Source of the DNA: Phallusia mammillata
Lineage: Eukaryota
Direction of reading: 5' to 3'
NCBI GenBank assembly: GCA_965637545.1
Contig: OZ281494.1
Coordinates: 2,418,001-2,482,000, forward strand
DNA: 64,000 nucleotides
Of the stretch, positions 6,901 through 37,972 are shown in pieces (position 1 is the first letter of the stretch; every line of letters starts with the position of its first letter). The notes beneath the pieces are model-generated. The model was not told the origin of the DNA. It worked only from the letters and a program-made list of their open reading frames with translations, and searched no databases. The translations under genes and the position numbers were made by a program.

Positions 6901-8400
6901 TTCAAAAGTCTCAAAATTCAGTTGCACCCACAAATATGTCTGCTTTCTGCTTATTGTTGATATTAGCTGGCACAAACCACTATTACCAGCAAAAATGTTG
7001 GCACGGGAAGTCATTACCGCATGGAAATAACATGGAAATTGACACGCGTCGATTGAAATGTAGTCGACCTCTGCTACAGAGCGTGACATTATTTTATGAA
7101 CAATACAGCCCAGGAAAAATGTTACTACATTTGCTCTTTTGCAAGTTAAAACTTAATTTAGAACTAAAGTAAACCACGGTTAATCCGGACCCCTTTGGAC
7201 CAAACAATTTGTGCGGATCAGGCGATAATCAAGACACAGACCAGAAAACCCGCATTCTATGGGCCTGGCGTAACATGATTTGTATACGAGTAAGTTATGT
7301 CTTATTTGTTGATGGTCTTCATAAACACTTCAGGGCTGATCGCAGATATAAATCTATGTTTATCTTAGGTACATTATATTCACGGTTTCGAATAATCTGA
7401 GCAAAAAATCTGAGTGTGTTCATCTTGGCTGGTATATAGTTAAATGCAAGTTAGTTGTAAAAATATGAAATAAGGAACGAAAACGGAAAAACGAAGTGGC
7501 TTAACAGGTCATCGTTTAATAATGTCAAATAAATATTCCCCAAATAAACCTTACCCTTTTCCTCCACATCAACTTTGGCGACTGTCAGAACATCTGGAAA
7601 TGCTGGGATATCAACAAGATAAGTTCCTTTTAGCTCGGGCTGGCATTTCTTGCAACGACAGTAAAATCTCAACCATTTCGTGTGAAACCTGAAAATGAAA
7701 GTCGGTTTTAGCACGATGTTATTGTGTACAAAACATTGACAACAGGCGACACAACTAGATTGTTTTGTTACTGTTTTAAAATTGCCACGCCTCATTGATG
7801 CAAGTGCCAGTTTTTAACACTCATTTTAGTAACAAAAAGAAACAGAAACGAAATGGTAACTTGAGCATGACGCGTTTACAAGCAAATCAAACTTCACATT
7901 TAGTGACCAAATCTGCTTCTATTGAAAGAATAATGAATGTTTTTACCATTACACATCATCGCTACATATGACTGGTTCGAACAGTGTAAAGAGTAGTTGT
8001 ATTAATTTAATGAAGAATATAATGGCCCAAATAGACTAAAAAAAGGACATGCTTTATTGTTCAAAAGTTTCGGCAAATGGTCATACCTTCATCAGTGATA
8101 TGAGGGCTACATCAGTTACACCCGTGTATATACACTGAAGTCCCAGAAAAGATCAATAATAAAGTGCAAAACATGCGTAAAATGGTATGATTTTTACATC
8201 CTAGCAGCTTGTAGGAAAGACCACAAAAAATGCAAGCAGTTATAATTGGCATATGTTAGTTTAGGTTAATTGTTTAGATTTTTCAACCATATATAATTGA
8301 CTTTGCATTATTCGTACCTGCTCTTATGTTGGTCGTTCCAAGTTACCTCCACCAATTTTTCACCAGCACTGGCACAAGCGGAAACAATCGAAAACTTCAT
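975..8400 (-). CDS. Gamma-butyrobetaine hydroxylase-like Fe(II)/2-oxoglutarate dioxygenase, paralogue A (3'-partial; last two exons lie left of the window)
   Basis: Exons 8318-8400, 7555-7688, 4709-4931, 4261-4336, 3924-3968, 2847-2968, 2130-2331, 975-1097, all GT-AG and in phase. Translation MKFSIVSACASAGEKLVEVTWNDQHKSRFHTKWLRFYCRCKKC...GFCLVKNVP...LGPIRETCYGT...LPFHMDQCSYEQPPGVVFLHCLK...GGKSRLTDFF follows the BBOX1/TMLHE layout (N-terminal WLRxxCxCxxC Zn motif, HxD, PPGxxxLHC, GGxS). Confidence 0.9.
1209..1520. mobile_element. hAT-type MITE
   Basis: TIRs CAGGGGTGGGCAACCT / AGGTTGCCCACCCCTG; TSD TTCTAAGC/CTCTAAGC; subterminal GCGGCCC motifs. Confidence 0.88.
1705..2045. repeat. Degenerate tandem repeat (about 120-bp units)
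   Basis: GGTCCTCAG...GAGCTTGTGTG...TGCCCAG...AAAATCTATGCTGC...TAAACTGG occurs at about 1711-1780 and 1812-1890, with a third decayed unit. Confidence 0.6.
3030..3409. mobile_element. Foldback/Mutator-like element with long TIRs built of 10-bp tandem units
   Basis: Arms 3030-3126 and 3326-3409 are inverted, made of GCATGT(T/G)ACC repeats; 9-bp flanks CAGTTTGAA / CAGTTTGAG. Confidence 0.8.
3613..3857. mobile_element. Palindromic repeat (family H2) with a hammerhead-like motif in its arms
   Basis: Inverted arms ATAAGCTGCAGA...TTGGCTAG / CTAGCCAA...TCTGTAGCTTAT; right arm 3806-3842 reads TGCA-CAGATGA-GACCT-tat-AGGCC-AAAA-CAGTG-TGCA. Relatives at 8862-8918, 17600-17690 and 54997-55285. Confidence 0.65.
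5228..5296 (+). mobile_element. tRNA-derived SINE head (tRNA-like pseudogene)
   Basis: A-box-like TGGTAGAGCG, B box GGTTCGAATCC within a GTGGG/CCCAC T-stem, mismatched acceptor stem, shortened D arm. The flanks recur inverted at about 1565-1607 and 7320-7367. Similar heads at about 22642-22701 (+) and 34075-34118 (-). Confidence 0.65.
5608..6019. mobile_element. hAT-type MITE
   Basis: Ends CAGGGTGCACAACC...GATCCCTG; TSD CATTAGAG/CATTGGAG; internal homology to 16018-16555. Confidence 0.7.
6765..7073. mobile_element. Degenerate hAT-type MITE
   Basis: Ends CAGGTGTCAGCAACC / GTAGTCGACCTCTG; GGCACG/CGTGCC subterminal motifs; TSD 6/8. Confidence 0.55.
8020..8100 (-). mobile_element. Penelope-like terminal-repeat fragment with degenerate hammerhead (family H1, copy a)
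   Basis: Minus strand 8098-8061: TCA-CTGATGA-A-GGTA-tgaccatt-TGCC-GAAAC-TTT-TGA, followed by AATAAA; homologous to 11213-11295 and 28040-28152. Confidence 0.7.
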
Positions 8401-19604: not shown

Positions 19605-20660
19605 ATAACGCCATAATGTGTCATAGTTTTCAAAAATTGTTCAACTTTTAGGGAATTCAAATAATAATTAAAAGTTTTATTAAACCAGTAAAAGGCCTTT
19701 GAAGTCCTGAGGGGGAAACATATCAAATCACTACATATTTTGGGTTATGTTCGTTCAAACGCGTGAGAATAAAGAATCGCTCTTTCCGTCTGCTGTTACC
19801 AAAATTTTGGCTCTTTCATCTTGTTGGTGATAAAAAGCACTCGTCGATGGGCTCATGGCGTTTTCCATTAGGGTTTTGTTTCAGCACGCCACCGCTAACA
19901 CCTCTCACACACATTAGCATGCCACTAATGGGCATGCCTGATTGTAAATACCAAAACAATTTGTCGAGGGCGCACACGGGTGTTAATTACACTTAAGCAT
20001 CTTGTGACTAACCTTGTACCTTTTATTCGACTCCAGATTTGTCATGTGACAGAAGAAATTATATTTAAATGTAGAACATGGCATGTAAACAATTTATTCA
20101 GTGGGTGATTTGCTGCCAACAGTTACAAACGTCATGTTTGTTTTCTTTGCAAGGAAGTTGATGTGCCAGAAATTCAACTGCAAGAAAACCTATGTAATTG
20201 ACAGCTCAATCATACGATAGTTGCGTTCGAAACAGTCGAAGTAATCTTTGAGAATGGAGTGTTGTGAAAGAAACAAAGTAAATCAACGCTTTGTTGAGCA
20301 TACATATATCGATCTTAAAAATGAAATCACGATTTTAGTGGATATGGAATAGATGCAGAACTTGTTTGTAAATTGAGTGTCTAGTGAAAAAATTTAAAAA
20401 AATTAAAAAAAACTAAAAAAATTTTTGCGTAGGAACTATGCATTTAGATTTTGAAAACAAATTGCTCTTATATATCTTTAACGTTTGATAGACTTCATGT
20501 TTAACGTTTAAGAGAACGAAAAGACTTTTTAACAAGAGCATCGCTTTATATTTGTGCTCACTTGTTTTCTGACTGTGTAATCATAGTAATGTTTAATATA
20601 GTTTGCATAAAAAATCGTCAATGCAAGATATTTTGGGGAATTCTGCTTCAGTTCATCGTA

Positions 20661-23600
20661 ATGACAAGTTGTGCAAGTCTCTTTCACGAGTTATCGGAGA
20701 CCGGTCTATGGGATCTGATAGCTGACGACCGATCTACCAATCTTATCGCAAAAGCTCTACTCGACAACGGCCTTCTCCGACATAAAGATTTCTGGGAAAT
20801 CCGAATCCAGGCAACAGAGAAATCAAGATTCAAAGCTCTTATATTATACATAGACTTGGTTATAAGTGAGCATAACGACCCTAAATTGGAGTTTAATGTG
20901 TCGACTATTATTGTCCTTTTGGTAAATGCTTTGTATCAGGGTTTAATTGAAAACCAATCGCTTACTTACTGCAGCCAGTTGCGTATTTGTTTCTTAATAC
21001 AATGGCTTGTAGATTACAGCGAGGGCCAAACGTACTTAAAAGCAAGCCAGAAGGTTTGCACTTTGTCAGGAATTCCAAGCCACAAACGTGACAACTCATC
21101 AGGTGCATTAACGACCGACCTATATGACGTCACGCCCCCCAGGCCCGCATTTACGAGCTCGCGAAGTTTTTCGGTCACAGCGCAGGTCCACGATTTTGCA
21201 TTACTCAACAACAAGAGTAGCGGGCGAGATGTTCCTAAGGTAGCGGGCGCGAGTGAAACAAGGAAACTGTTTAAAACTGGCGTAAACAGACATAAGAAAC
21301 GAAGCAAATACCAGCAGCCGATTCCCCGAGGCGTTTTAGCGTCTCACGATTACATCGAAGCTTTGGAATGTTGCGAATCTAATCAGCTTCCAACTTCACA
21401 CAACAACGATAACAAGAGAGAGAGGTTTCTTTCTCTACCAGGGCAAGTCGACAGCGAGATGGAGATTGTTGCGACGGCTTGTGGCATTAGACAGACTTTA
21501 GGCTTCAATCCCGAATGCATGGAGAATAACCGGAGCTCTAGGACTGGTTCATTTAAACAGAGAGTTACTGTCCGCGACGGAGAGATTAACGACGTTTTTG
21601 AAAGTTGCGATCGATTTAAATCTCTCTCCTGTCTCGACAGACTTCGTAATTTTTCTTCTAGTAACCTCGATGAAAACCAACGCGAAGATGTCGATGTGTG
21701 TTGTGACGTAACAAACGGTGATAGTGACGGAGGATTTGTGTCACATGACGAAGCAGATATTGTTTCAATTTCTTCTTTTGCTTCGGCGTCAAGTTTCTCG
21801 TCTGAGATTTTGAACGGTTGGTTGAACGAAGAGGAATTTGATTCGAGACAGGATTCTTTGCTGGAAAGCAAGAAAATGGAACAAACTGGTGAAGTAGATA
21901 ACAAAGAAAATGTTACAGCAAAGGTCAGCAATGTCAAAGAAAACCCAGTTACATATGTTTGCATCAAAGAGCCAGACGCCAAAATGCTAATTCAAGAATC
22001 TGAAGTTCAACGTAAGGTTGTAGAGAGTAAGTTAACGACGTCAGTTACCATGGGAACAGTACCCAGAACACAGAGAGACGTATTTTGGTCGACCGAGCCC
22101 GAACTAAGATCAACTGTGGACTTTAGAAAAGTGCTGCCAGATCTCCTGAAGTTCAACATATTCAGCGCTGAACAGAAATCGAGGTACGGGGATTTCAAGG
22201 GCAAGTTTTCCAGTTTGATTTTACAAGCTGTTGGTGAAAGAATCGACCAAGATGAGTCAGTGCTGGGACCGTTTCTGCTGGCTCTGCGGCCTCATTACCC
22301 TGCAGTTGTGGATAAAATACATCAAAGAGTATTTTGTGAAGTGCACAGCCAAAGACCGAAGTCAGGATCTCTTCAAAACGAAAATTGTGACACCGGTGGT
22401 GAAGGATTCCAGAAAACAAGGTAACATTTGAAAGTGTTGTTCAAACTAGATCTATCAGCTACGCTACAACTCCATCAGCTGCGACTAGCACTCATTAGCC
22501 AACACTTTATCCATTATTACCATGTTATTAATTATGCTTACGGGTTTTAGTTTTGCACTTATCGTTGTTGTGTAATTTATGTAAGGATTAAAACAAGTAC
22601 TTGAGACCCTTATTCGGTATTAGCACTGCAACTGCCGAGTCTGCGTGTTTTAGTTGGTTGAGCGCTCAGCCTGTGGTTGTGGTTTGTATCCCACAACATG
22701 CTTAATCTTACTAAGGCCACGCATGCTGTAGTAAACATTGAAGACCCACTTGGGCTCAAACCAACTTTTAAATCTAGAAATTCAAATCTCTATTATAAAA
22801 CGTTTTACCGCGTGTCTTTTGCTATCGTAATTTTTGCTTTGCCAAGAAAGTCAGGGGCTCAATTTAGGTTGCTGTTGTTGCCTCTAAATTTTGTAAAAAC
22901 TTTCTCGTTTGTTTTAATATTCATTATCGTTCCAGGGGGTTCCCCAAGCATCAGCGACGTTACAACTTCGACCACCAGGGGTCGCCCTATCGCCCTATCA
23001 CGTGACCCCGATCACATGATAAACTTGCAAAAAAACTACTTGCCACATCCTGCTACAAGTCGTTACTTCTCAAAGGGTAAGCCAATAGTTTGAAGTCTAT
23101 ACCATTCTTTTTTATGGGACAACATTGCACTAGCGCGACGGTCGAAACTTAAGACTGTACCTAAAAATAACTAACACATGTACAGTTGATGTTGCTTTGG
23201 TTGCACTTTCCCCGGGCCAGATAGAAGGGAAGTAGAACATAAGTCAGATTTGAGGGCAATGTGATATAGACATATACACTGTGTTGTCGTTGGACTGAAG
23301 GCAAAAGTATATGAAACAAAAGTTATCTGATTGTTAACACTAAAGCAAGCGCTGCAATCTTTGCCCCTTGCGCCCCAAAACAAAGACAGTGCAGCTTTAC
23401 CATCGGTTTTTGTTTAAGGTAGTATTCAGACGTTTACAGCTAGAAACTGTGCACACAATTAATGACATCTCATATTTTCCTTCATTATTTTTCAGATACT
23501 TTAAAGCACTCAGCAATCCCCAACAACAATACAACAGCACCACAGATTAAACCAAGTCTTACAACACTGACAACCCCGAACCAACACACCAGACTTGGTC

Positions 23601-26600
23601 TTAAAGCCAACAACACAAAGAAATTATCGTCCACAAATGACGCTAGAGCACATTCTTCACCAAAGAAAAATGCGAAGAACAGTAAGGAATTACCATCCAT
23701 GAAAACTGATGACAAATTGGTTGAGAGCAAGAAAACGCTCAACCATAAGACGGTGGCGGACCACAGTTTGCAACCAGTGATAGTTGAACCAGAGCAGTTC
23801 AACCAACCAGCGGACCAGGTAGACAAAACAGTAGACACGAAAGATGGAGAAACGAAATTGCCAAAAGAAGATTTATCGAAAACCGATCAACCAGAAGCCA
23901 ACGAAGATCAGCAACCATCATGCCTAGATGAAACACCAACCAAAACTTTGCCAGAAGAAGAAAAAGGTAAGCACCACTTTTTAACCATTTAAATGGGACA
24001 AACAAGAGAAAACGTCTGTTATTGGTGTATTAAGTATTTGATTTTCCTGTCCATAAAAGTAGGTGAAGTCAAATATTTCTTGTAATTAGATCAGCATTAG
24101 AAAACTAGCTCGTTACTTTGATCGCGGACAACTTGCAACGCTTATAGGCAATATCCGATTTCGAATCAGTTACACGGTTACATGCGTGAAACTTTATTGC
24201 ATGACAACGACGTCCGATGTCCAGGAAATTGCCCGGTGACCTTCAAACCTGTCTGGCGACCTTCAGGGCGACACGTGACCCTATTGTGACGCGTTCAAGT
24301 CTCATAAGTTCAAACAAAGGGGCACCGACTGCACAAAGCATTGCCGTAAACCTGTTTGACAGGGGCCCTATATTTAACTGTAGGTTCTTGCAGATGAATA
24401 ACGGCTTTGTTGGAAAGAAAAGTTTAAACCTTGCAATTTGACATTTGGCACCACATAGTTATCTGTAACTTTGCGAGATAAGACACTTGCGTGTAATGTT
24501 TGCATCAACGTTATCAGCTTGCAAGATAAGGATGAAAGACGAGCTCTGTTGCAGCTGAGACGTGAAATACCAAACTACTTCTGTGACACATTAGTGGCAA
24601 CGGAAACTCCATTAAAATTCCTGTAAAGTTAAAGCCACGAGTTCAAGGTCGAAATGCACTTAAGGTTCAATATCTTGTGCACAAAATCCGACTTAAAATT
24701 ATAGACTTACAAGTTTTATCGTGTTTTGGACATTGCGGCATTTTGTACAAACATATTTTGCCTGACAAGTTTTTTTTTTACCACATAGCGGTATCTTGGC
24801 AAAAATGCAGTTATAACAATGAAAAAATGCTTATAAATGACGAAAACTGATAAAACTGATATATTATCAACAAAATAGAAGAAAGAACTTTAAAATGTTA
24901 AAGCGTTTTTCATACATCTGTTTTTCAAATCGTGTGTTGAAATTAATTTTCTTTTTTAAAAACCATACTGGCTACAAAAAGTTAAAAAATCCACTTTAGT
25001 AATACCAAAGCAACAAAGTCTTGAAAAATGTGAAACAGTCGTGTTTTTCATGTGGTTTTTGAATCGTGCTTCTAAATTAATTTTCTCCCTTCTAAACCGC
25101 ACTGCACTTGTTATCAATAATCACCAGCAACAAACAACATAGATTCGCACTCAATTAGTTTTGCCAAGATCCAAGAACCACAACACTCAGGATTTACACA
25201 ACAACTACGGTGGGATACCACAGGGTGCGATGCTATCTCTACTTCGCGGTAAAAACTTAAAACACGTGCAATGTACCCGGTGATTTATCGATATTGCAAT
25301 CAATTTCAATCTGAAGGCGTTTGTTTTGTGCCCAACCCGAATCTAATTTTGTGCAAAACCGCAAGTTTTTTGTTTAAGCGGAAACCAGTTCATCGTTTTG
25401 CATCGGAAAACAGGTTATAACAGCGGTTCTCAAACTGGGGTCCGCGGCCCTTTAGGGGTCCGTGAGGCAATTTTGGGGGGACCGCGAAAAGGTTGAAGTA
25501 ATTTTATAATCTTATTTGGGGTCAGTTTGTGTCACTAAATAAGTTCAAATCAAAGTAGAATTGAGAATGTACTGTCTGTATTGCTAAACAATAGCCTTTA
25601 TTGCATGACAATTAACAAAAATGCAATTGTTCGCGCACAATCGTAATGTTTTTTTGTCTTGTTTGTGATGTCACAAGCATCTTTGAAACATTATTATTCG
25701 CAGTTTTGTATAACTAGTTAAAATCCTGCAATCAACTTTCGTTTTTCTGAAATACACATTCAAGCTTGAGGACCGCGAGCCCTTGAAATAATGGCAAAGG
25801 GGCCGTTTTGAAAAAATAATGAAAAAGTTTGAGAACCACTGGGTTACAACATTTAAAGTTTAAACTAAGAATTTTTGTATTGTTCCTAAAAATAAAATAA
25901 AATTAAAGAACATTTTAGCGGTTTTTAGATGTCGTATAAACCTTCATGTTAAATTAGGATTCGTGTAAAATAAACATGTTTAGACATTTTTTTTATTTTC
26001 GTTTCTTTAAGTAAGAAACAAATGTATTAGCAAGTTGCTGAGGTTACCAATATAAATAGCATCACCTGGCCTAATACGGAAATAAATCAAGATTATAAAT
26101 GATAGAAAGCGCAGATAAATAATGCAAATAAAATGTCCACAAATTAATGTGTAACAGCTACAACGCCAAGTTGAAAAATCAAAGTTTGTTAATGTTCACA
26201 TAAATGAAATGCAATAAACAAAAAAGTCGATTTTACACCGACAAGGTTCAGCAACACAACTACATTGTGACGTCGTAAACAATCCCTTATGACGTGTCCT
26301 CGGTACTTAAACCCCCGAAGATGAATCGGTAAACGCTTGTCTCCTGTGTTTGCGTTTTATTGCCCCCTTGAAGTAAAACCGTTAATCGCAAACAAGTTCG
26401 CCAACTGCACACTTTTTCCCACGCAACCACTTTTACCTTCGTTGATTATAAAAAGAAAAAAACAGAGTCTTTGACAAACACACATTTCCAAATAAGGCTT
26501 CATTTCTTTAAAGGTTCCGAGATTTTTTACCATCTTAAAAAAACAACTTATAAGACTTGTTGTTTGGTGAAATTTAATATATTGTGCTTTTTTAAAAGCA

Positions 26601-29600
26601 TTTAAACATAAGAACCTTTTATCTTTGATAACAAAAAAAATCTTGGAAAGTGTTGGAAAGTAGGTCATATATTTTATCGTTAATTATTACCCTAACCCTA
26701 AGTATTGTTTTTGATAAAACTAATAGTTTTCTTTTCTTACAAAGGTACAACCGACAAAAGTACGGAGCCCATCAAACGAAGTAGCCATGTGAAGCGCGCC
26801 ACATCTTTCCAGGAGCACAGAACCGGACAATGCGCTACTGGAGTGGATAAAATTACTCCCGAAAACAAAACTAAACGCAGTCGCCTCCTGAAAAACTATT
26901 TCCACGAGAAACAGGACGGAAAACCGCGAACACGATCTCTTAGTTTTTCATCACATCCAGAAAAGAGCCAGAAAACAAAGAATTCTCCAACAGCAGACGA
27001 AATAATACAATCCAAGCTTGAACAACTCAGCATGGGCACAGAGGCTTCACAAACTGACAAAGATGACCCTGACGCAGTTTTAACGGAGTTAGTCAAGCGT
27101 TGCGTGGTAAGCGCGCGTTCGGGATGGTTAATCCGAAGATTCCCGAGTGTTTCCGATCGTCGAAACAAGCTTCTCACCCTATTGGCTAATTTGCCTGAAT
27201 GTGACGTAGCGGAAGTGAAAGAAAATTGTCCAATCACAATCGAGTTTGTGAAACGCAACTGTCGCGTGGAAAAAACAACGAAACCAGAAAAAGAAAAGGT
27301 AAAAATTCGTAATCTCTTTAAACGTTGATTAACTAACAAGCTTAACGAAAGCAACTTTGAATACATAGGCTTGAAAACCAAAAAGTTTCGAACAGGCCCA
27401 AACTCATCAAGTGTGTTGAGTTTCAAACAAGTTTTAAGAACGGTTTCGGACAAGGCATTATTTGTATTTGAAAAGCACGAACAATAACTTTCTAATTATA
27501 GTGTTGAAGCCAAAGTGCCAAAAATGGCCTTTGACTTAAAACTCCCTAAAACGTGGTTAGAAAAAATGCGCTTGATAACGATATAACATATCATTCAAAC
27601 ATATCATTCAGCATGTTCATTATAAGGGTTTCAAAGACGTTTAACCTGACATTGCAGTCAAACCAAATTACCAAAAAATCCCATTTACTAAGCAAAGGGA
27701 TTCACAAACGTTCTATTAATTACTCTTTCCTTTCACGTAATTTTTTAAGGAATCACCTCCAAAGGAAAACAATGATGTCACTATGACGTCAGCGACCGCC
27801 AAACCGAACCTCGAATCTACGTCACCACCGCAGTAAGTGCAAATAAACACAAAGTTTCATCTCTGTGACAGAGTAGGTTATAAATACGAGATTACATTGA
27901 TCGGATTAAACTTCTGCGTCATAACTTTGTTTCTGGATGGGCGCGACAACTTGAACTTGCGTTTTGAGGAGAAAGTCGAAAAAATTACAAGTGTAGTGCG
28001 AATCTTTACGTGCTATTTGTGGCTTTGTTGTCTCACAAGGGACATGTAATGTTATGTTTCATTTTCAAACGTTGCGGCAAATGCTTATGTCATGATCAGT
28101 AGTTTGCCGAAAACTTTTTGTGACTTGGACATCGTTCTTTTTGCGTCTATTCGATTTCACATAAAGAATAATGTGACTGTTTCAGAGATTTGTCCACCAC
28201 TATTATTTAATATTAACACAACCACAACATACAATAATGCAAGATTTTGTTTTTAAACGAGCTTTCAGCAATCAAACCACGTGACTTATATATTTGTTGC
28301 GACATTTACCATTTCTATTTCCATGTGAAAGTTTTAGGTGAAAAATAAGTTTAAAATATACCTGTTGTAAATGGATATAATTAACTGAACGGGCTCAGTA
28401 GAGAAATGCCTTAAAAGGAAAATCCTATAGTAACGCCCCTACGTTTTAATTACGCAAGAACCGCTTAGTATAATCGCAGTACGAGTAATGAATTGCCCAA
28501 ATTGTTATCGCATAGTTTAATTGCAGGAATCAGTGTGAAATACAAGGAACTGAATCTAAGAATATGCTTGAAGTTGAAGCAGAGGTGGAAGCCACAACAA
28601 CAACCACAACGGATCTCTGCGGAGCAAAACGACTTCGCGGCGCTAATTCCGATTTAAACCGCGACATCGATTGTGACATCACACTTGAAGAGGCGCGGCA
28701 AGCAGAAGAGAATGAAAGAGAAAGAATCCGGGTCGGTGAAATCGAGGCTTTTTCTCTCGCCGCTGCACCTGAAGAGAAGGTTGGCCCGCCGACAGAAAGC
28801 TTTTCAAACTTGAACTGCTCGCAGCAAAACAATATCACAGCGATAGATCAACAATCATTAACAGAAGCAGTGCAAGATAGTACAGAAAACTTCCCGAAAC
28901 AACAAGCTAAGGAGCTTAGTACTGGTGATAATTTAAAGGAAATCAAAGCAGCAAACTCAGGCGAGAAATTGAAGAAAAAAAGTGGCACTTTTGTCAGCCA
29001 CATTTTGTTTCCTATTTCAAAGAGGAAAAACGCGGAAATACGAAAGAAATCAGAAGTTGGAAAACTTGCAATTCCAGTAAAGGTGACGCAGAGCGCAATA
29101 ACAGAAAAGCAAAAAGATTGCCCAGGCAATTCTTTCAGTGAAATAAACTCCGAAATGCCACCTGTGTTATCTGTTGTCCCGACTCAGAAGATGGATCTAA
29201 TACATGGACATTGTATGGAACCAATTCACTTTGACAGGAGGTCGCCTTCGCCTCTTACGACAATCTTAACAAATGGGGGAAATATTTCGCCGCCTTCGAG
29301 CAAAAAGAAAGGAGCTCGAGTCTCATTCAGCCAACTTCCCCCGGTAGAGATCGAGCTGGAGCCGCAGGATTCAGATTGGGACTCGAAGTCGAACTCTCAC
29401 AGCACCAATGTGACTTCGCTGGTCACCGATTCAGTTGTGACTCTCACAGTGAAATCAGAACCAGTTGTTCAGGAGCAATCGCTAACAAAGCCTGTTATTG
29501 TGACGAAGAAAACAAAAAAGAAGCCTGTCAATCATTCTATTAATGAAATAGATCAGATTAACGAGCTGCTGATGGATATACTCGAGGAAATTGAGGCTGA

Positions 29601-32600
29601 CAATATTTCACTCAACCATTGCTTGGATAACTTGGTACGCGATGGACTTATGAGTGAAGATGTTGCTCTCAGTGTGAGTCCGAATTTCGTGGAGTTCCAA
29701 ACACGCTCGGCGTCACCTACATTAGTGGATGAATATCAGAGCGACGTCGAAAAGGAACGAGGTGTAGAGAAACTTCTCGACGTCCTAACCAACCTTGGAC
29801 TTGAAAAGTTGCAACGCTGCCGCAATTGTGTTTTGGGTCGCTTGTGTCAACTCGCCAGATACGAAGATTTTGAAAGCGCACAAAAAGCGGCCGCAGCAGC
29901 CAGCGATTCCTCCCCTGAACTCTCAGCTAGCAGAAAAACTTACGAAAAACCCGAAATTGTAAAGTTTCCCGTCGTAAACTCTCCACCACGCGCTCTCACA
30001 ATAGGGAGAGTCCCTTCTACCGAAGACTCTGAGTTATCTGCCACTGAATCTGATGATGACTTTTACTCGTTACGTCATCAAATCGGACGTCAGCGTCATG
30101 ACGTCATCACCAATCCGACAATCGAGGAAGAAGATGATGACAATGATTTCTCTGCAGAAACTAATAAAAGGCTTGATCAGAATCACAATGTTCTCGGTTC
30201 GAGGGAGATTGTTGACGTCAAAGCTGCGATGCCAACTTTGATTGATAACTGCGTCATAGCGCCACGTCATGCTTGGCTGATTTTGGGCGCGGGCGATGAA
30301 CATGACCAGAAAGCAAAGTTGAAGCAATTTCTTCGCCTCGCGGATCAAGCGAAACTCCAATCTTTGTATTCAAATCCGCAATTCAGTTGGATTAAAACCT
30401 TGATGGAAGATGACAATATTGTGGAGGCTGTTTCAAATCCGCGTCTCTCATTTCTCAAAGCAAGAGAGAGATTTCAGAAGCCAGCATCCAAACTGGGAAG
30501 ATCTTCCTCCCTTCGTGCATCCGATCTTCATGGAGGGAACGCTCCCAATTTTTCGGATGTTGCTGATCTTGTGGAGAAGCACGCCGCGGCTCGGGAAGAG
30601 CAAGAGAAGAGACTCTCTCCTCCTCTGGACGCGCTCCTGAAAGGAAGAGGAGCAAGTTTGAGAAGAACTCAATCCGTGAACATGAACACTGGCGCCAACT
30701 TAAGGGAGAACAGAAATACCGACAACGGAACTGGTAAGATTAACAAAGATAAAGATACAAGTGGTTATCAAGGATGAACAAGAATATACTGAACTTAAAA
30801 AGTATACCAAAATTTTTGAAAGTATACCAAAATTTGCTTTTTATATAATATGTGTTCATTCTGCACCACATTAATCAAAGTTTTAATAATTGTCAGTAAT
30901 ATATTCAATATGAATTGTCAAATACCAATGTTTGAGAAATTTAAGTGCTTTGAAACGGCTCCTTTCGTTAAAGTTTTTCATAGCCTAACTCTAAACAAAC
31001 CGCTTGCTAAATGCATAACGATTACACCACCTTCTTGTTTAATTTGTTAAAATAAATTGACCTTTTAAGCGTATGCTAGTACGAAAGCATGCCTTAGTCA
31101 TTGCCTAAATTCATATTTGGAAATGTCAAGTATGAAGGCGATTAATTTGACAACTTAAACCTCGCGCGCCTTTAACGTAATTACTTGAATACCTCACTAA
31201 CACACTTGACACCACACACACACTTAATTGTGCAGCAATTTACATCAATTACACGTGTTCATGCGAAGATCTAAACCTTATGTGCATGAAATTGGTTTTT
31301 GCAAACTAAATTAGGAATTTGGTTTTAAACCGGTTTTCAAAAGTTGTTATTGCTTCAGTAAAGTAAAGCATTAACTGGGAGTCTGATCTGTTGAAATTCT
31401 ATCAAAATATATTTTAGAATTGACCTGATGGAAACTCTAAACCAGGGGTTTGCAACCTTTGTAACTGTGGGGCCAAATACAATTGCCAAAATTATATTGC
31501 GGGCCGCACCTTTATGTAACACAAGGTGATTTTACTTTGTTGCATGCCAAAAATGCCTTACTACAAGTAAAATTCGCATTTGATTCGTGCAGCATGTTGT
31601 CAGTTCGCAGAAAAATAGCACAGGGCGCACTAATCTGCTCATGAAAATATAATAAATGGACTCGATTGCCAGTACATTTTAAATCCAAGTGTCTCTGCGG
31701 GCCGCACAACTTTAGTCAAAGGGCCGCAGGTTGCCCACCCCTGCTCTAAACTAACAATTAAAATATCTTTTAATTCAGATTGTGAAAAACGTTTTATTTC
31801 AAATTGGCATATTTGTTGGTCAATAAATCAATAATATTTCGCCCCAAACCAAAAAAGCAAGTTTAAATTTACCCACATGTTGATTTACAGCCTGAAATTT
31901 AAATGACAGTGCAGCTAATTGCAGCGCCCTTTCATGAAATTTTAGCATTTTGATGTTGTTTACCACGCCATTAGGACAAGTATCCTTTTTTACCGTTTTG
32001 CATCATTACTGTAACACAGCTCATTTATAGCAAAATAAATTAAAATTGTTTTTTTGCTGTTACGTGCTAGAGAACGAAATTGAATTTAAATTTACCCCAA
32101 TGTCAGTTTACAGTTTAAACTGGCATTGACTGTAAATGATTGCTGCGCCTTTTTTCAATTTTACGTTTTTTTGTATTATTATAAGCTTACCTGATAGCAT
32201 CAAAGGTGACGTTCGTTTCTATAAAGTTCATAACATATAATTAAGTATTTTTTTAGTTTTCAGTAGGGCAGGGGTCAGTAACCTTTTTTGTGCCGCGGAC
32301 CGTTTTTGAAACGGAAATTTTTTTGCGGACCCACCTTTAAAAAACAACAAATATTCAGCAATGAAAACGACACAATTTTGCCGCTGTAGAGGACTCCATT
32401 TAGCAAAACAAATTAGCATTACTTTCTTGCTTATTCCAGACGAAAACTTGAGCAGTTGGTGCCGTTCCAAGCAGCTTTCCCAACAAATCACCGACGCCCT
32501 GTCACAAAACGGATACCAGGGAGTTGACGATCTGCGGGGAATCACCGAAAGTGAGATCGAGCAGCTGAGCGGACTTGGTTGGATCGAAAAAGCCAAATTG

Positions 32601-32690
32601 TGGGTCGCGGTTGAAAACATGAGATTGGATGAGTTTTATCAAAAGACACACAGCGGTCTCGCCGATATTATGAAGATACTAGACAAGTAG
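20661..32690 (+). CDS. Large uncharacterised protein (about 1,814 aa) with five CARD-like death-fold segments and a C-terminal SAM domain
   Basis: Proposed exons 20661-22398 (alternative donor 22420), 22936-23076, 23496-23966, 26745-27298, 27750-27832, 28527-30733, 32440-32690 (5445 nt, phases consistent), backed by long ORFs at 20562, 23462, 26705, 28564 and 32361. CARD-like segments at about 20661-21020, 22068-22335, 26995-27255, 29550-29850 and 30170-30410. SAM-like segment LSSWCRSKQLSQQITDALSQNGYQGVDDLRGITESEIEQLSGLGWIEKAKLWVAVENM at 32440-32625. The first donor and the C-terminal end are uncertain. Confidence 0.72.
25421..25841. mobile_element. hAT-type MITE
   Basis: TIRs CAGCGGTTCTCAAACT / AGTTTGAGAACCACTG; TSD GGTTATAA/GGTTACAA. 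Confidence 0.85.
28040..28152. mobile_element. Family H1 copy c: two degenerate fragments in inverted arrangement
   Basis: 28064-28100 (TTCAAACGTTGCGGCAAATGCTTATGTCATGATCAGT) matches copies a and b; 28103-28152 (TTTGCCGAAAACTTTT...TTTTTGCGTCTATT) matches them in the opposite orientation. Confidence 0.55.
31443..31743. mobile_element. hAT-type MITE
   Basis: TIRs CAGGGGTTTGCAACCT / AGGTTGCCCACCCCTG; perfect TSD CTCTAAAC. Confidence 0.88.
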
Positions 32691-33405
32691 AAAGGGTGAG
32701 AAATACGTTGTTTTGTACGTTGCACAAAGTTCAACAGCAGTGCAGCCTATTAGTATAAGAACTGAAACTAATAATATTCATGAAAAAAATTACAACATCC
32801 TTTCGTTTTTGAGTTTGATCATTTCAAGTTCCAAGTTTAAAACTTAAACAAAAAGTGTAGGACTCGACAGACACAATTCAGTGCTTTGTCTAACTCTCGA
32901 ATTTATTGTATTTTAAACTTTTGATTTTTTACAGAAACCCAAATAAAGTTGGCGCATATAACAATCAACAGGATGGTCAGATCTCAACAAAACTCTGCTG
33001 CGACACCTAAAGGAAATATTCACCAAATGTATGAACACTTCTTACAGTGTATCCACTGAGAACAGTTTTGTATAACTGCACAAGTAGTCATAAGCAAAAG
33101 CGTCTGCCTTATTTACCGGACAAAAACATTTTGTTGCAAACCAGGGAATTATGTTAACTTTTCGTGTTTTTTACTTGCTTCTTATACATTTTACAATTTA
33201 TTTCTTTTTTATGTTCCGTGTTTATGCTGAATTGTTAACTTACTTTTATGGCATATGCCAACATGCTCAAATACACATGTACACAACTACGACGTGTTTT
33301 AGTTGTTTACACTACGAAAGTGGAAATATCTTTACAACAACAATACTAGAATTAGGCTACTTACAACGGTTCCTTAAATAACACCAAAAACTCCTCCATC
33401 TAACG

Positions 33406-33640
33406 CAGTGGTCGGCAACCGCCGGTCCGCGGCCCGGTACCGGTCCGCGAGGAGTTCGTTACCGGGCCGTATAATTTTTCAGGGTAAATGCTATGAACAT
33501 TTTGCCCATGTATTTCGGGGATGATAAACTAATTTAAGCGTTTTTATTGCTAAATATTTGTAGTTTTTTTTATGACCGGTCCGCGGTAAAATTTTCATTT
33601 CAAAAGCGGTCCGCAGTGCAAAAAAGGTTGCCGACCCCTG
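33406..33640. mobile_element. hAT-type MITE
   Basis: TIRs CAGTGGTCGGCAACC / GGTTGCCGACCCCTG; perfect TSD ATCTAACG; GGTCCGC subterminal motifs; a partial inverted relative lies at about 32268-32335. Confidence 0.9.
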
Positions 33641-36733: not shown

Positions 36734-37972
36734 CTATTTGCGCTTGACAAACTTGCGGCCAACTGCGTTCGGATTTCTATGGCCTCGAGGATGTTGTTGC
36801 CCAGATCTCACACCCAAGCGAAAAGCGCGGCTGTTCACTTCATTTGTGATAAAAGGAGATGAATTACAATCATAATCATCACTCCATACATTGGTTTTCT
36901 GCAAAGCCTTGCGACTCAACCTGTCGTGTGGGAACCTCTGATCCTCACATAATAATGGATTGTGAGCATGCTTTCCACCTTGTGGTGTGGGAAGGGAATA
37001 ACGAAGTCCACGAGGATTTAGAACTTTTGGGTTTCGAGAAAAGAACATTTTCATCGTCCCATCTTCCTGGATTTCCACAGGGACTCGTTTTAAAGTTTTG
37101 TTCCCACATTTTGGACAGAAGATTTTATCCATGATTTTGGTAACATGAAAGCAAGCATGGCACCGAAGTACATAGCTTCTAGCTGTTTTAATTCGCATTC
37201 CGTCAACAGACAGTACCTGTAGATTCATTTGTATGAGAACATTCTGCATTGCAAAATCTGTTGTGAGACATGCAACACTTGTGTCCTGCTCCTGTAAGTC
37301 TTCAAGCTGTTCTTCTTTCATTTCCTGCAGCATCCCAGGAGTGATCCAACCATCAGTGTCCTCTTCTTCATCATCTGCTTGTTCATCCGAGTCTATTTCA
37401 TCCTCTCCAGATTCTGTCTTCTCCTCAGGAGCAACATCAGGAATTTGTAAATCATGATCTGCTGTTTCTTCTGTTTGAATGGTTATACTTTCAAACTTAT
37501 CAGTCAAGTTATTCTCATTTTCATCATTTGCTTTATCTTCACTTGTTTTTTCGTTTGCTATTTCCTTTGATTTATTTTTGTTTGGCAAATAAAATCCAAG
37601 TAGTTCAGTTTCTTTGATCGGTTTACGTCCCAACTCGATTTGGTTCTTAGCTTTAATATCTTCCTTAATTTTGTCTTTGGAGCCATGAAGGGAAGTTAAC
37701 TCATATGTTAAAGCAAGAACTTTAATGTCTGTGTGTGAAAGACTGCCATAATCTCCTGTTTTCTTTGAAACTTCTGTGATTTTTTGGATTGATTCCGTTC
37801 CTGGTTGTTTGTAGTTGATCTGATACGGAAGAGCGGCTAATCTTTGCTTCGTAGCTTTATCTTTGATTTCAGAAATCACCTCTGGGATAGTATAGATAGA
37901 ACTTCCCAATTGGTACAAATCAGCATTTCTTATAAATGCACCAGAATCCGCTATTAAATATTCCACTTTCAT
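36734..37972 (-). CDS. NOB1: RNA-binding protein NOB1 (18S rRNA site D endonuclease), single-exon CDS, 412 aa
   Basis: PIN domain start (LIADSGAFIR...EVISEIKD...TGDYGSLSHTDIKVLAL), GWITP motif, VACLTTDFAMQNVLIQM, Zn ribbon RCHACF...FCPKCGNKTL, RGLRYSLPTPQGGKH; AATAAA on the minus strand at 36683-36688. Confidence 0.97.
   Translation of the reverse strand: MKVEYLIADSGAFIRNADLYQLGSSIYTIPEVISEIKDKATKQRLAALPYQINYKQPGTESIQKITEVSKKTGDYGSLSHTDIKVLALTYELTSLHGSKDKIKEDIKAKNQIELGRKPIKETELLGFYLPNKNKSKEIANEKTSEDKANDENENNLTDKFESITIQTEETADHDLQIPDVAPEEKTESGEDEIDSDEQADDEEEDTDGWITPGMLQEMKEEQLEDLQEQDTSVACLTTDFAMQNVLIQMNLQVLSVDGMRIKTARSYVLRCHACFHVTKIMDKIFCPKCGNKTLKRVPVEIQEDGTMKMFFSRNPKVLNPRGLRYSLPTPQGGKHAHNPLLCEDQRFPHDRLSRKALQKTNVWSDDYDCNSSPFITNEVNSRAFRLGVRSGQQHPRGHRNPNAVGRKFVKRK

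Follow-up and report, generated by a model that had tools for sequence, protein, structure and literature searches.

Apoptotic and innate-immune signalling rely on death-fold domains as connectors, and known proteins carry, to our knowledge, one or two of them. In the tandem-CARD proteins RIG-I, MDA5 and NOD2 and in the adaptors ASC, BCL10, MAVS and RAIDD, these one or two modules are usually adjacent and are often combined with an NTPase or a helicase. Here we describe a gene of the ascidian Phallusia mammillata, located at positions 20,661 to 32,690 of a 64,000-nucleotide stretch (the window; assembly GCA_965637545.1, contig OZ281494.1, positions 2,418,001 to 2,482,000), whose predicted product of ~1,815-1,830 residues is mostly intrinsically disordered. 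It resembles the tandem-CARD proteins and adaptors in carrying more than one putative death-fold module per chain or in following a non-enzymatic adaptor logic. However, it differs from them in distributing five such modules over ~1,800 disordered residues, in lacking any enzymatic or sensor domain and in ending with a SAM-like domain. With a probability of roughly 0.6, we interpret the product of this one expressed gene as a tunicate-restricted, non-enzymatic, multivalent scaffold that combines five divergent modules of CARD type with a SAM-like end and a dock for the phosphatase PP1.

Disordered scaffolds that target PP1 form a second group of close described systems. RVxF is the canonical docking motif of PP1 regulators and is used by KNL1, Ki-67/RepoMan, NIPP1 and spinophilin/neurabin, of which neurabin likewise has a C-terminal SAM domain. 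The Phallusia product shares with these scaffolds a basic run and an RVSF motif followed by a hydrophobic pair, placed in disordered sequence and kept across orthologues, which together form a putative dock; yet it carries neither PDZ, FHA, actin-binding nor other domains of those families and has no sequence homology to them. The last exon finds its best sequence matches, aligned over the whole domain, in the SAM domains of SASH3/SAMSN1, Caskin and the ASK-type kinases, although, unlike these, the window sequence scores below the Pfam cut-off.

Among invertebrate chordates, amphioxus possesses novel death-fold and TIR combinations, including TIR-SAM, DD/DED-NACHT and similar arrangements (PMC2575513). 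The present gene likewise comes from an invertebrate chordate lineage with an unusual combination of connector domains, but the amphioxus list contains no multi-CARD-SAM protein (PMC2575513), and the named relatives of the Phallusia family are ascidian only.

Five CARD-like islands in a disordered protein

An earlier note, made from the sequence alone, had proposed five CARD-like islands and a SAM-like last exon, and all five peptide islands, like the last exon, were recovered in plus-strand open reading frames of the window (Table 1). The islands are non-random: they stand out by their conservation and, where modelled, by their confident folding in a protein that is otherwise disordered and evolves fast; islands 1 and 2, for example, are separated by ~350 disordered residues within the same exon.

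The AlphaFold prediction for window 29254-30417, which drew on 14 family sequences, shows disorder everywhere outside islands 4 and 5. Island 4 (residues 95-218 of the model) is predicted with seven helices at a predicted local distance difference test score (pLDDT) of ~90; six of them form the antiparallel Greek-key bundle of a CARD (~90 residues), and the seventh is a short insertion between H3 and H4. In the same model, island 5 spans residues 322-385 with five helices (pLDDT ~88). Modelled alone from 17 island 5 and island 3 sequences, it was predicted with similar confidence (pLDDT ~90, helices 23-86), and its five helices superpose on CARD helices 2-6. The additional helix of island 4 and the lack of a confident helix 1 in islands 3 and 5 distinguish these modules from described CARDs (PF00619; NOD1, Apaf-1/CED-4, caspase-1, ARC, NLRC4).

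An unbiased structure scan of 48,161 chains placed CARDs at the top of the lists for both modelled islands. For island 5, 26 of the 30 top rows were CARDs, aligned to CARD helices 2-6; the Foldseek top rows were CED-4/CED-3, CARD8 and CARMA1 (all E > 1), and the only domain-sized match in the ESM Atlas was a CARD16 cluster (TM 0.53). Nuclear-type CARDs (SP100) were also present among the matches. According to these models, islands 4 and 5 have a CARD-like fold.

Sequence profiles, in contrast, recognise none of the islands as CARDs. Searching the exon translations one exon at a time, never as a joined protein, hmmscan returned no match to PF00619 CARD, Death, DED or PYRIN in any of them at E values up to 10, and the same search on all members of the island alignments (2, 4 and 5; sets of 13, 11 and 4 family members per island, in no particular order) likewise produced no death-fold match. 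The islands are not CARDs by Pfam profile and are largely CARDs by predicted structure, as judged from the models of islands 4 and 5.

Weaker sequence signals were obtained with a small profile of five canonical CARDs from the same genome, whose loci all lie elsewhere, outside this gene. In hhalign comparisons, this profile matched island 2 at E 4.3e-4, islands 3 and 5 at 1.1e-3, island 4 at 0.01 and island 1 at 0.09, with all islands aligned in one shared helix register. The profile of island 2 further yielded nine weak matches among Protein Data Bank (PDB) sequences at E ~1, six of them CARD or CARD-derived (four NOD1 CARD sequences, the MDA5 CARD and a design from 1cy5, the Apaf-1 CARD), and among language-model clusters the four closest to it all belong to PF00619 CARD (score 0.85). 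The nearest language-model clusters of island 1 include CARD families (scores 0.89 and 0.86), which we treat as a lead only, and island 1 aligns weakly with island 5 in the CARD register (hhalign E 0.0024). These sequence affinities suggest that islands 1 and 2 may adopt the death fold, probably as full bundles. Single-sequence and profile searches of PDB sequences with island 4 gave no match.

Relationships among the islands are closest for islands 3 and 5, which are paralogues on sequence comparison (BLASTP E 2e-4; hhalign E 2.4e-5, probability 76%); the island-5 part of the family profile also matches island 3 of the Clavelina orthologue (independent E value 3.7e-5). Mutual paralogy of islands 1, 2 and 4 was considered and is unsupported (hhalign E 0.08 for island 2 against 4 and 0.098 for 1 against 4). 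A profile match of island 5 to 9ld1 (E 3e-4) was discarded as a repeat artefact, because it adds up 15 weak TALE-repeat matches. Within the window's own genome, neither the short island type nor the SAM exon has a paralogue, and the profile match for island 3 at contig positions 2445041-2445289 is its own locus.

The absence of NACHT, caspase, kinase and TIR domains, as read from the bare sequence, agrees with Pfam, which finds none of them in the exon translations. The accompanying claim that no transmembrane region exists is less clear-cut: the highest 19-residue hydropathy (1.69, a borderline value) falls within island 1, and the aligned Clavelina stretch appears less hydrophobic when judged by eye.

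A SAM-like end and a putative PP1-docking motif

The last exon probably encodes a divergent SAM-like domain. Its translation scores 18.2 bits against Pfam SAM_2 (E 0.0028), short of the cut-off of 20.5; the best family member reaches E 6.6e-5. A seven-sequence profile of the exon matches the SASH3 SAM domain in the PDB (E 0.001), and an hhalign comparison with seven SAM domains of the same genome spans the full domain (E 0.019).

The disordered region ~70 residues upstream of island 4 (pLDDT below 50 to 61) contains the RVSF motif. In 12 of the 14 rows of the alignment it falls in one and the same column, which corresponds to 11 of 13 distinct homologues because CAB3262599, the previously deposited P. 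mammillata protein, is 98% identical to the window; one of these proteins has KVAF instead. At this position the proteins contain no other match to the RVxF pattern. Conservation is much higher than in the surrounding sequence, with a majority-residue fraction of 0.71 compared with 0.22-0.29 on either side. The site thus matches the pattern [RK]-x(0,1)-[VI]-{P}-[FW] in a disordered setting with conservation among orthologues, and RVSF may dock PP1.

Several further short motifs are conserved in the disordered parts: LFPIS-x-RKN (28993-29031), an acidic S/T-rich patch resembling SELSATESDDDFY (30028-30066), SDLHGG (30520-30537) and a serine-rich stretch ending in W-L-x-E-E-F (21765-21839).

A proposed scaffold function and its principal alternative

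In the scaffold that we favour, a higher-order complex would form through homotypic or heterotypic contacts of the CARD-like modules and the SAM-like domain, and PP1 would be recruited to it by way of the RVSF motif. Oligomerisation, hub function and any biological role are what we infer for such a protein, and the PP1 motif, together with the SP100-type nuclear CARD matches, leaves room for quite different biology. The structural insight of the earlier note is largely borne out by these results, and its interpretation as a multivalent hub is supported in part.

The PP1 motif and the nuclear CARD matches also fit the best-surviving alternative, a lineage-specific, PP1-targeting and possibly nuclear disordered scaffold. 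Its islands would be generic small helical bundles with a superficial likeness to CARDs, or CARD-derived domains without death-fold signalling (compare SP100/AIRE and the cIAP CARDs), and its role would lie outside immunity and cell death, for example in chromatin, the cell cycle or embryonic patterning. We regard this alternative as a real but minority possibility. Generic bundles are difficult to reconcile with the fact that both structure lists are topped specifically by CARDs and not by mixed helical bundles, and the CARD sequence signals, although weak, arise by four independent routes in a consistent register.

A far more specific version of the favoured scaffold can also be envisaged, namely a tunicate-specific organiser in which each of the five death-fold modules would seed or cap a different CARD assembly, SAM polymerisation would concentrate the chain and PP1 would tune it. 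We consider this elaboration unlikely; if true, it would describe a death-fold hub without counterpart in vertebrates, flies or worms.

Distribution of the family

The closest protein is P. mammillata CAB3262599 (P0003 in our set; annotated as 'uncharacterized LOC100180752'), an N-terminally partial sequence of 1,573 residues; compared one exon at a time, it is 90-98% identical to the window. Protein identity is ~90% in exons A and B and 97-98% in the 3′ exons (26745-32690; 97% in exon D), and on this sequence comparison the divergence between the two Phallusia sources is uneven along the gene.

An exhaustive search of 1.84 billion representatives, using a three-sequence profile of islands 4 and 5, retrieved 14 genuine relatives among a total of 15 proteins at E <= 1e-3; a word search with exon D matched two proteins. 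All named members are ascidian and uncharacterized (CAB3262599; Clavelina lepadiformis XP_076815800; Styela clava XP_039256768). Among named relatives, the family is restricted to ascidians. Literature searches on the gene name and on CARD-SAM architectures returned nothing relevant and no mention of the gene, and the domain arrangement is described in no database or paper.

The full architecture is conserved in the Clavelina orthologue, which comprises 2,201 residues, begins at the same methionine as exon A and carries the same five islands and SAM-like end in identical order. A metagenomic 2-Mb contig (L002) encodes islands 2, 3, 4 and 5 and the SAM-like domain colinearly; island 1 was found neither 5.5 kb further upstream in that contig (L007) nor by a sensitive HMM (hidden Markov model) scan of all loci. 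Neither exon A nor residues 1-720 of the Clavelina protein recovered anything further in word-index searches, so island 1 is known from two sequences only. The 548-residue Styela member (L006, OZ123524.1 10001-14792) is a short form limited to RVSF, islands 4 and 5 and the SAM-like end; a search of the 10 kb upstream revealed none of islands 1-3. This short form suggests that the C-terminal half is an ancestral core or a separable unit.

Gene structure and expression

The region constitutes one expressed, spliced gene with seven coding exons (Table 1), as the earlier exon model had proposed; that model had missed two small exons (A2 and the micro-exon) and had extended exon D to the end of its open reading frame. 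Transcript contigs were placed on window 26700-32690, where four runs, one from each of four studies, have contigs that connect 26741-27295, 27747-27832, 28527-30732 and 32439-32690 across GT..AG introns. The three joints (27295>27747, 27832>28527 and 30732>32439) are clean, giving the one-gene model the RNA junction support it called for from exon C to exon E.

Upstream of exon C, the four transcript contigs share a loose 5′ end at 26741 that corresponds to the end of exon B (window 23933-23962). One contig of 5,240 nt reaches 1,840 nt upstream of exon C, a distance longer than exons B and A2 combined, and hence extends into exon A. Across exons B through E, the reading frames agree by arithmetic. 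Twenty public runs from six studies contain the stretch; 14 of these, presumed to be RNA, cover 34-54% of its sampled words, and about half of the compared stretch is exonic.

The exception to a continuous frame is exon A2. Its length is 0 mod 3, and linking the exon A donor at 22420 to exon B requires 2 mod 3, so the frame is not kept in this assembly. CAB3262599, a protein derived from an mRNA, aligns across the exon in two frames (22928-22990 and 22998-23135), where the window has 7 nt and CAB3262599 has 27 nt (9 codons), a 20-nt difference, with an 8-nt tandem repeat (two copies of CGCCCTAT) at the site of the discrepancy. Read in the manner of CAB3262599, the window reaches a TGA near 23003; an alternative donor at 22398 would give back one continuous open reading frame. 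The discrepancy could reflect allelic variation, alternative splicing or an indel in the assembly.

That the locus does not encode one giant protein, with the frame break truncating it after island 2 and the downstream part being separate or untranslated, or alternatively that the break is an assembly error, is very unlikely, since the length of exon A2, the TGA met when reading on from exon A and a Styela short form implying that the C-terminal half can stand alone are opposed by the long transcript contig reaching into exon A, by intact downstream exons with 97-98% identity to CAB3262599, by the continuous proteins of CAB3262599 and Clavelina and by the restoring donor at 22398.

Table 1. 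Features of the Phallusia locus and its neighbours (window coordinates)
Feature	Position	Strand	Remarks
Open reading frames with islands	20562-22424, 26705-27328, 28564-30777	+	SAM-like open reading frame ends at 32690
Exon A	20661-22420	+	Start codon at 20661; donor AAG/GT after 22420, phase 2; islands 1 and 2; CAB3262599 alignment covers 21459-22421
Exon A2	22936-23076	+	141 nt; CAB3262599 alignment
Exon B	23496-23966	+	Disordered, T/K/P/E-rich; CAB3262599 alignment, acceptor present
Exon C	26745-27298	+	Transcript contigs in 4 runs; GT-AG-adjusted (aligner: 26741-27295)
Micro-exon	27750-27832	+	83 nt; both joints in all 4 runs; present in CAB3262599
Exon D	28527-30733	+	Largest coding exon; conserved short motifs, islands 4 and 5; transcript contigs
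Exon E	32440-32690	+	Last coding exon; stop 32688-32690; upstream joint in 4 runs
Island 1	20661-20960	+	Putative N-terminal CARD-like; conserved with Clavelina residues 4-64
Island 2	22068-22355	+	Putative full-length CARD-like; conserved in Clavelina, L002 and L005
Island 3	27041-27289	+	Putative short (H2-H6) CARD-like; conserved in homologous loci L001, L002, L003 and L005
RVxF-type motif	29302-29355	+	Basic run, then RVSF-S-x-L-P-P-x-E-I with hydrophobic pair; putative dock
Island 4	29536-29907	+	CARD-like in model, seven helices
Island 5	30217-30408	+	Short CARD-like module in model, five helices
SAM-like domain	~32445-32627	+	Probable; divergent, within exon E
GBBH-like open reading frame	7451-7795	-	Weak match to GBBH-like N-terminal domain, E 5.7e-4
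NOB1 ribosome-biogenesis endonuclease	36734-37972	-	Single 412-aa open reading frame, PIN_6 and NOB1 zinc ribbon, apparently intronless

Genomic neighbourhood and an intronic repeat

The neighbours of the gene, NOB1 and a GBBH-like dioxygenase, are unrelated housekeeping genes. Rfam returned no match in window 20000-33500. The last intron contains a dispersed repeat of ~285 bp (31436-31720), itself without Rfam match, for which a first look at the own genome gave 1,373 candidates; the 40 rows listed, one of them the query locus, are 87-91% identical. This repeat explains the short, high-depth RNA contigs observed inside the intron.

Implications

Pfam sees none of the five modules, which would mean that HMM surveys under-count ascidian death-fold repertoires. 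The gene is expressed and single-copy, and the animal is experimentally tractable (Phallusia, Ciona embryos), so the hypothesis can be tested directly. Five CARD-like modules combined with a SAM-like end and a PP1 dock would constitute new network wiring in the closest invertebrate relatives of vertebrates.
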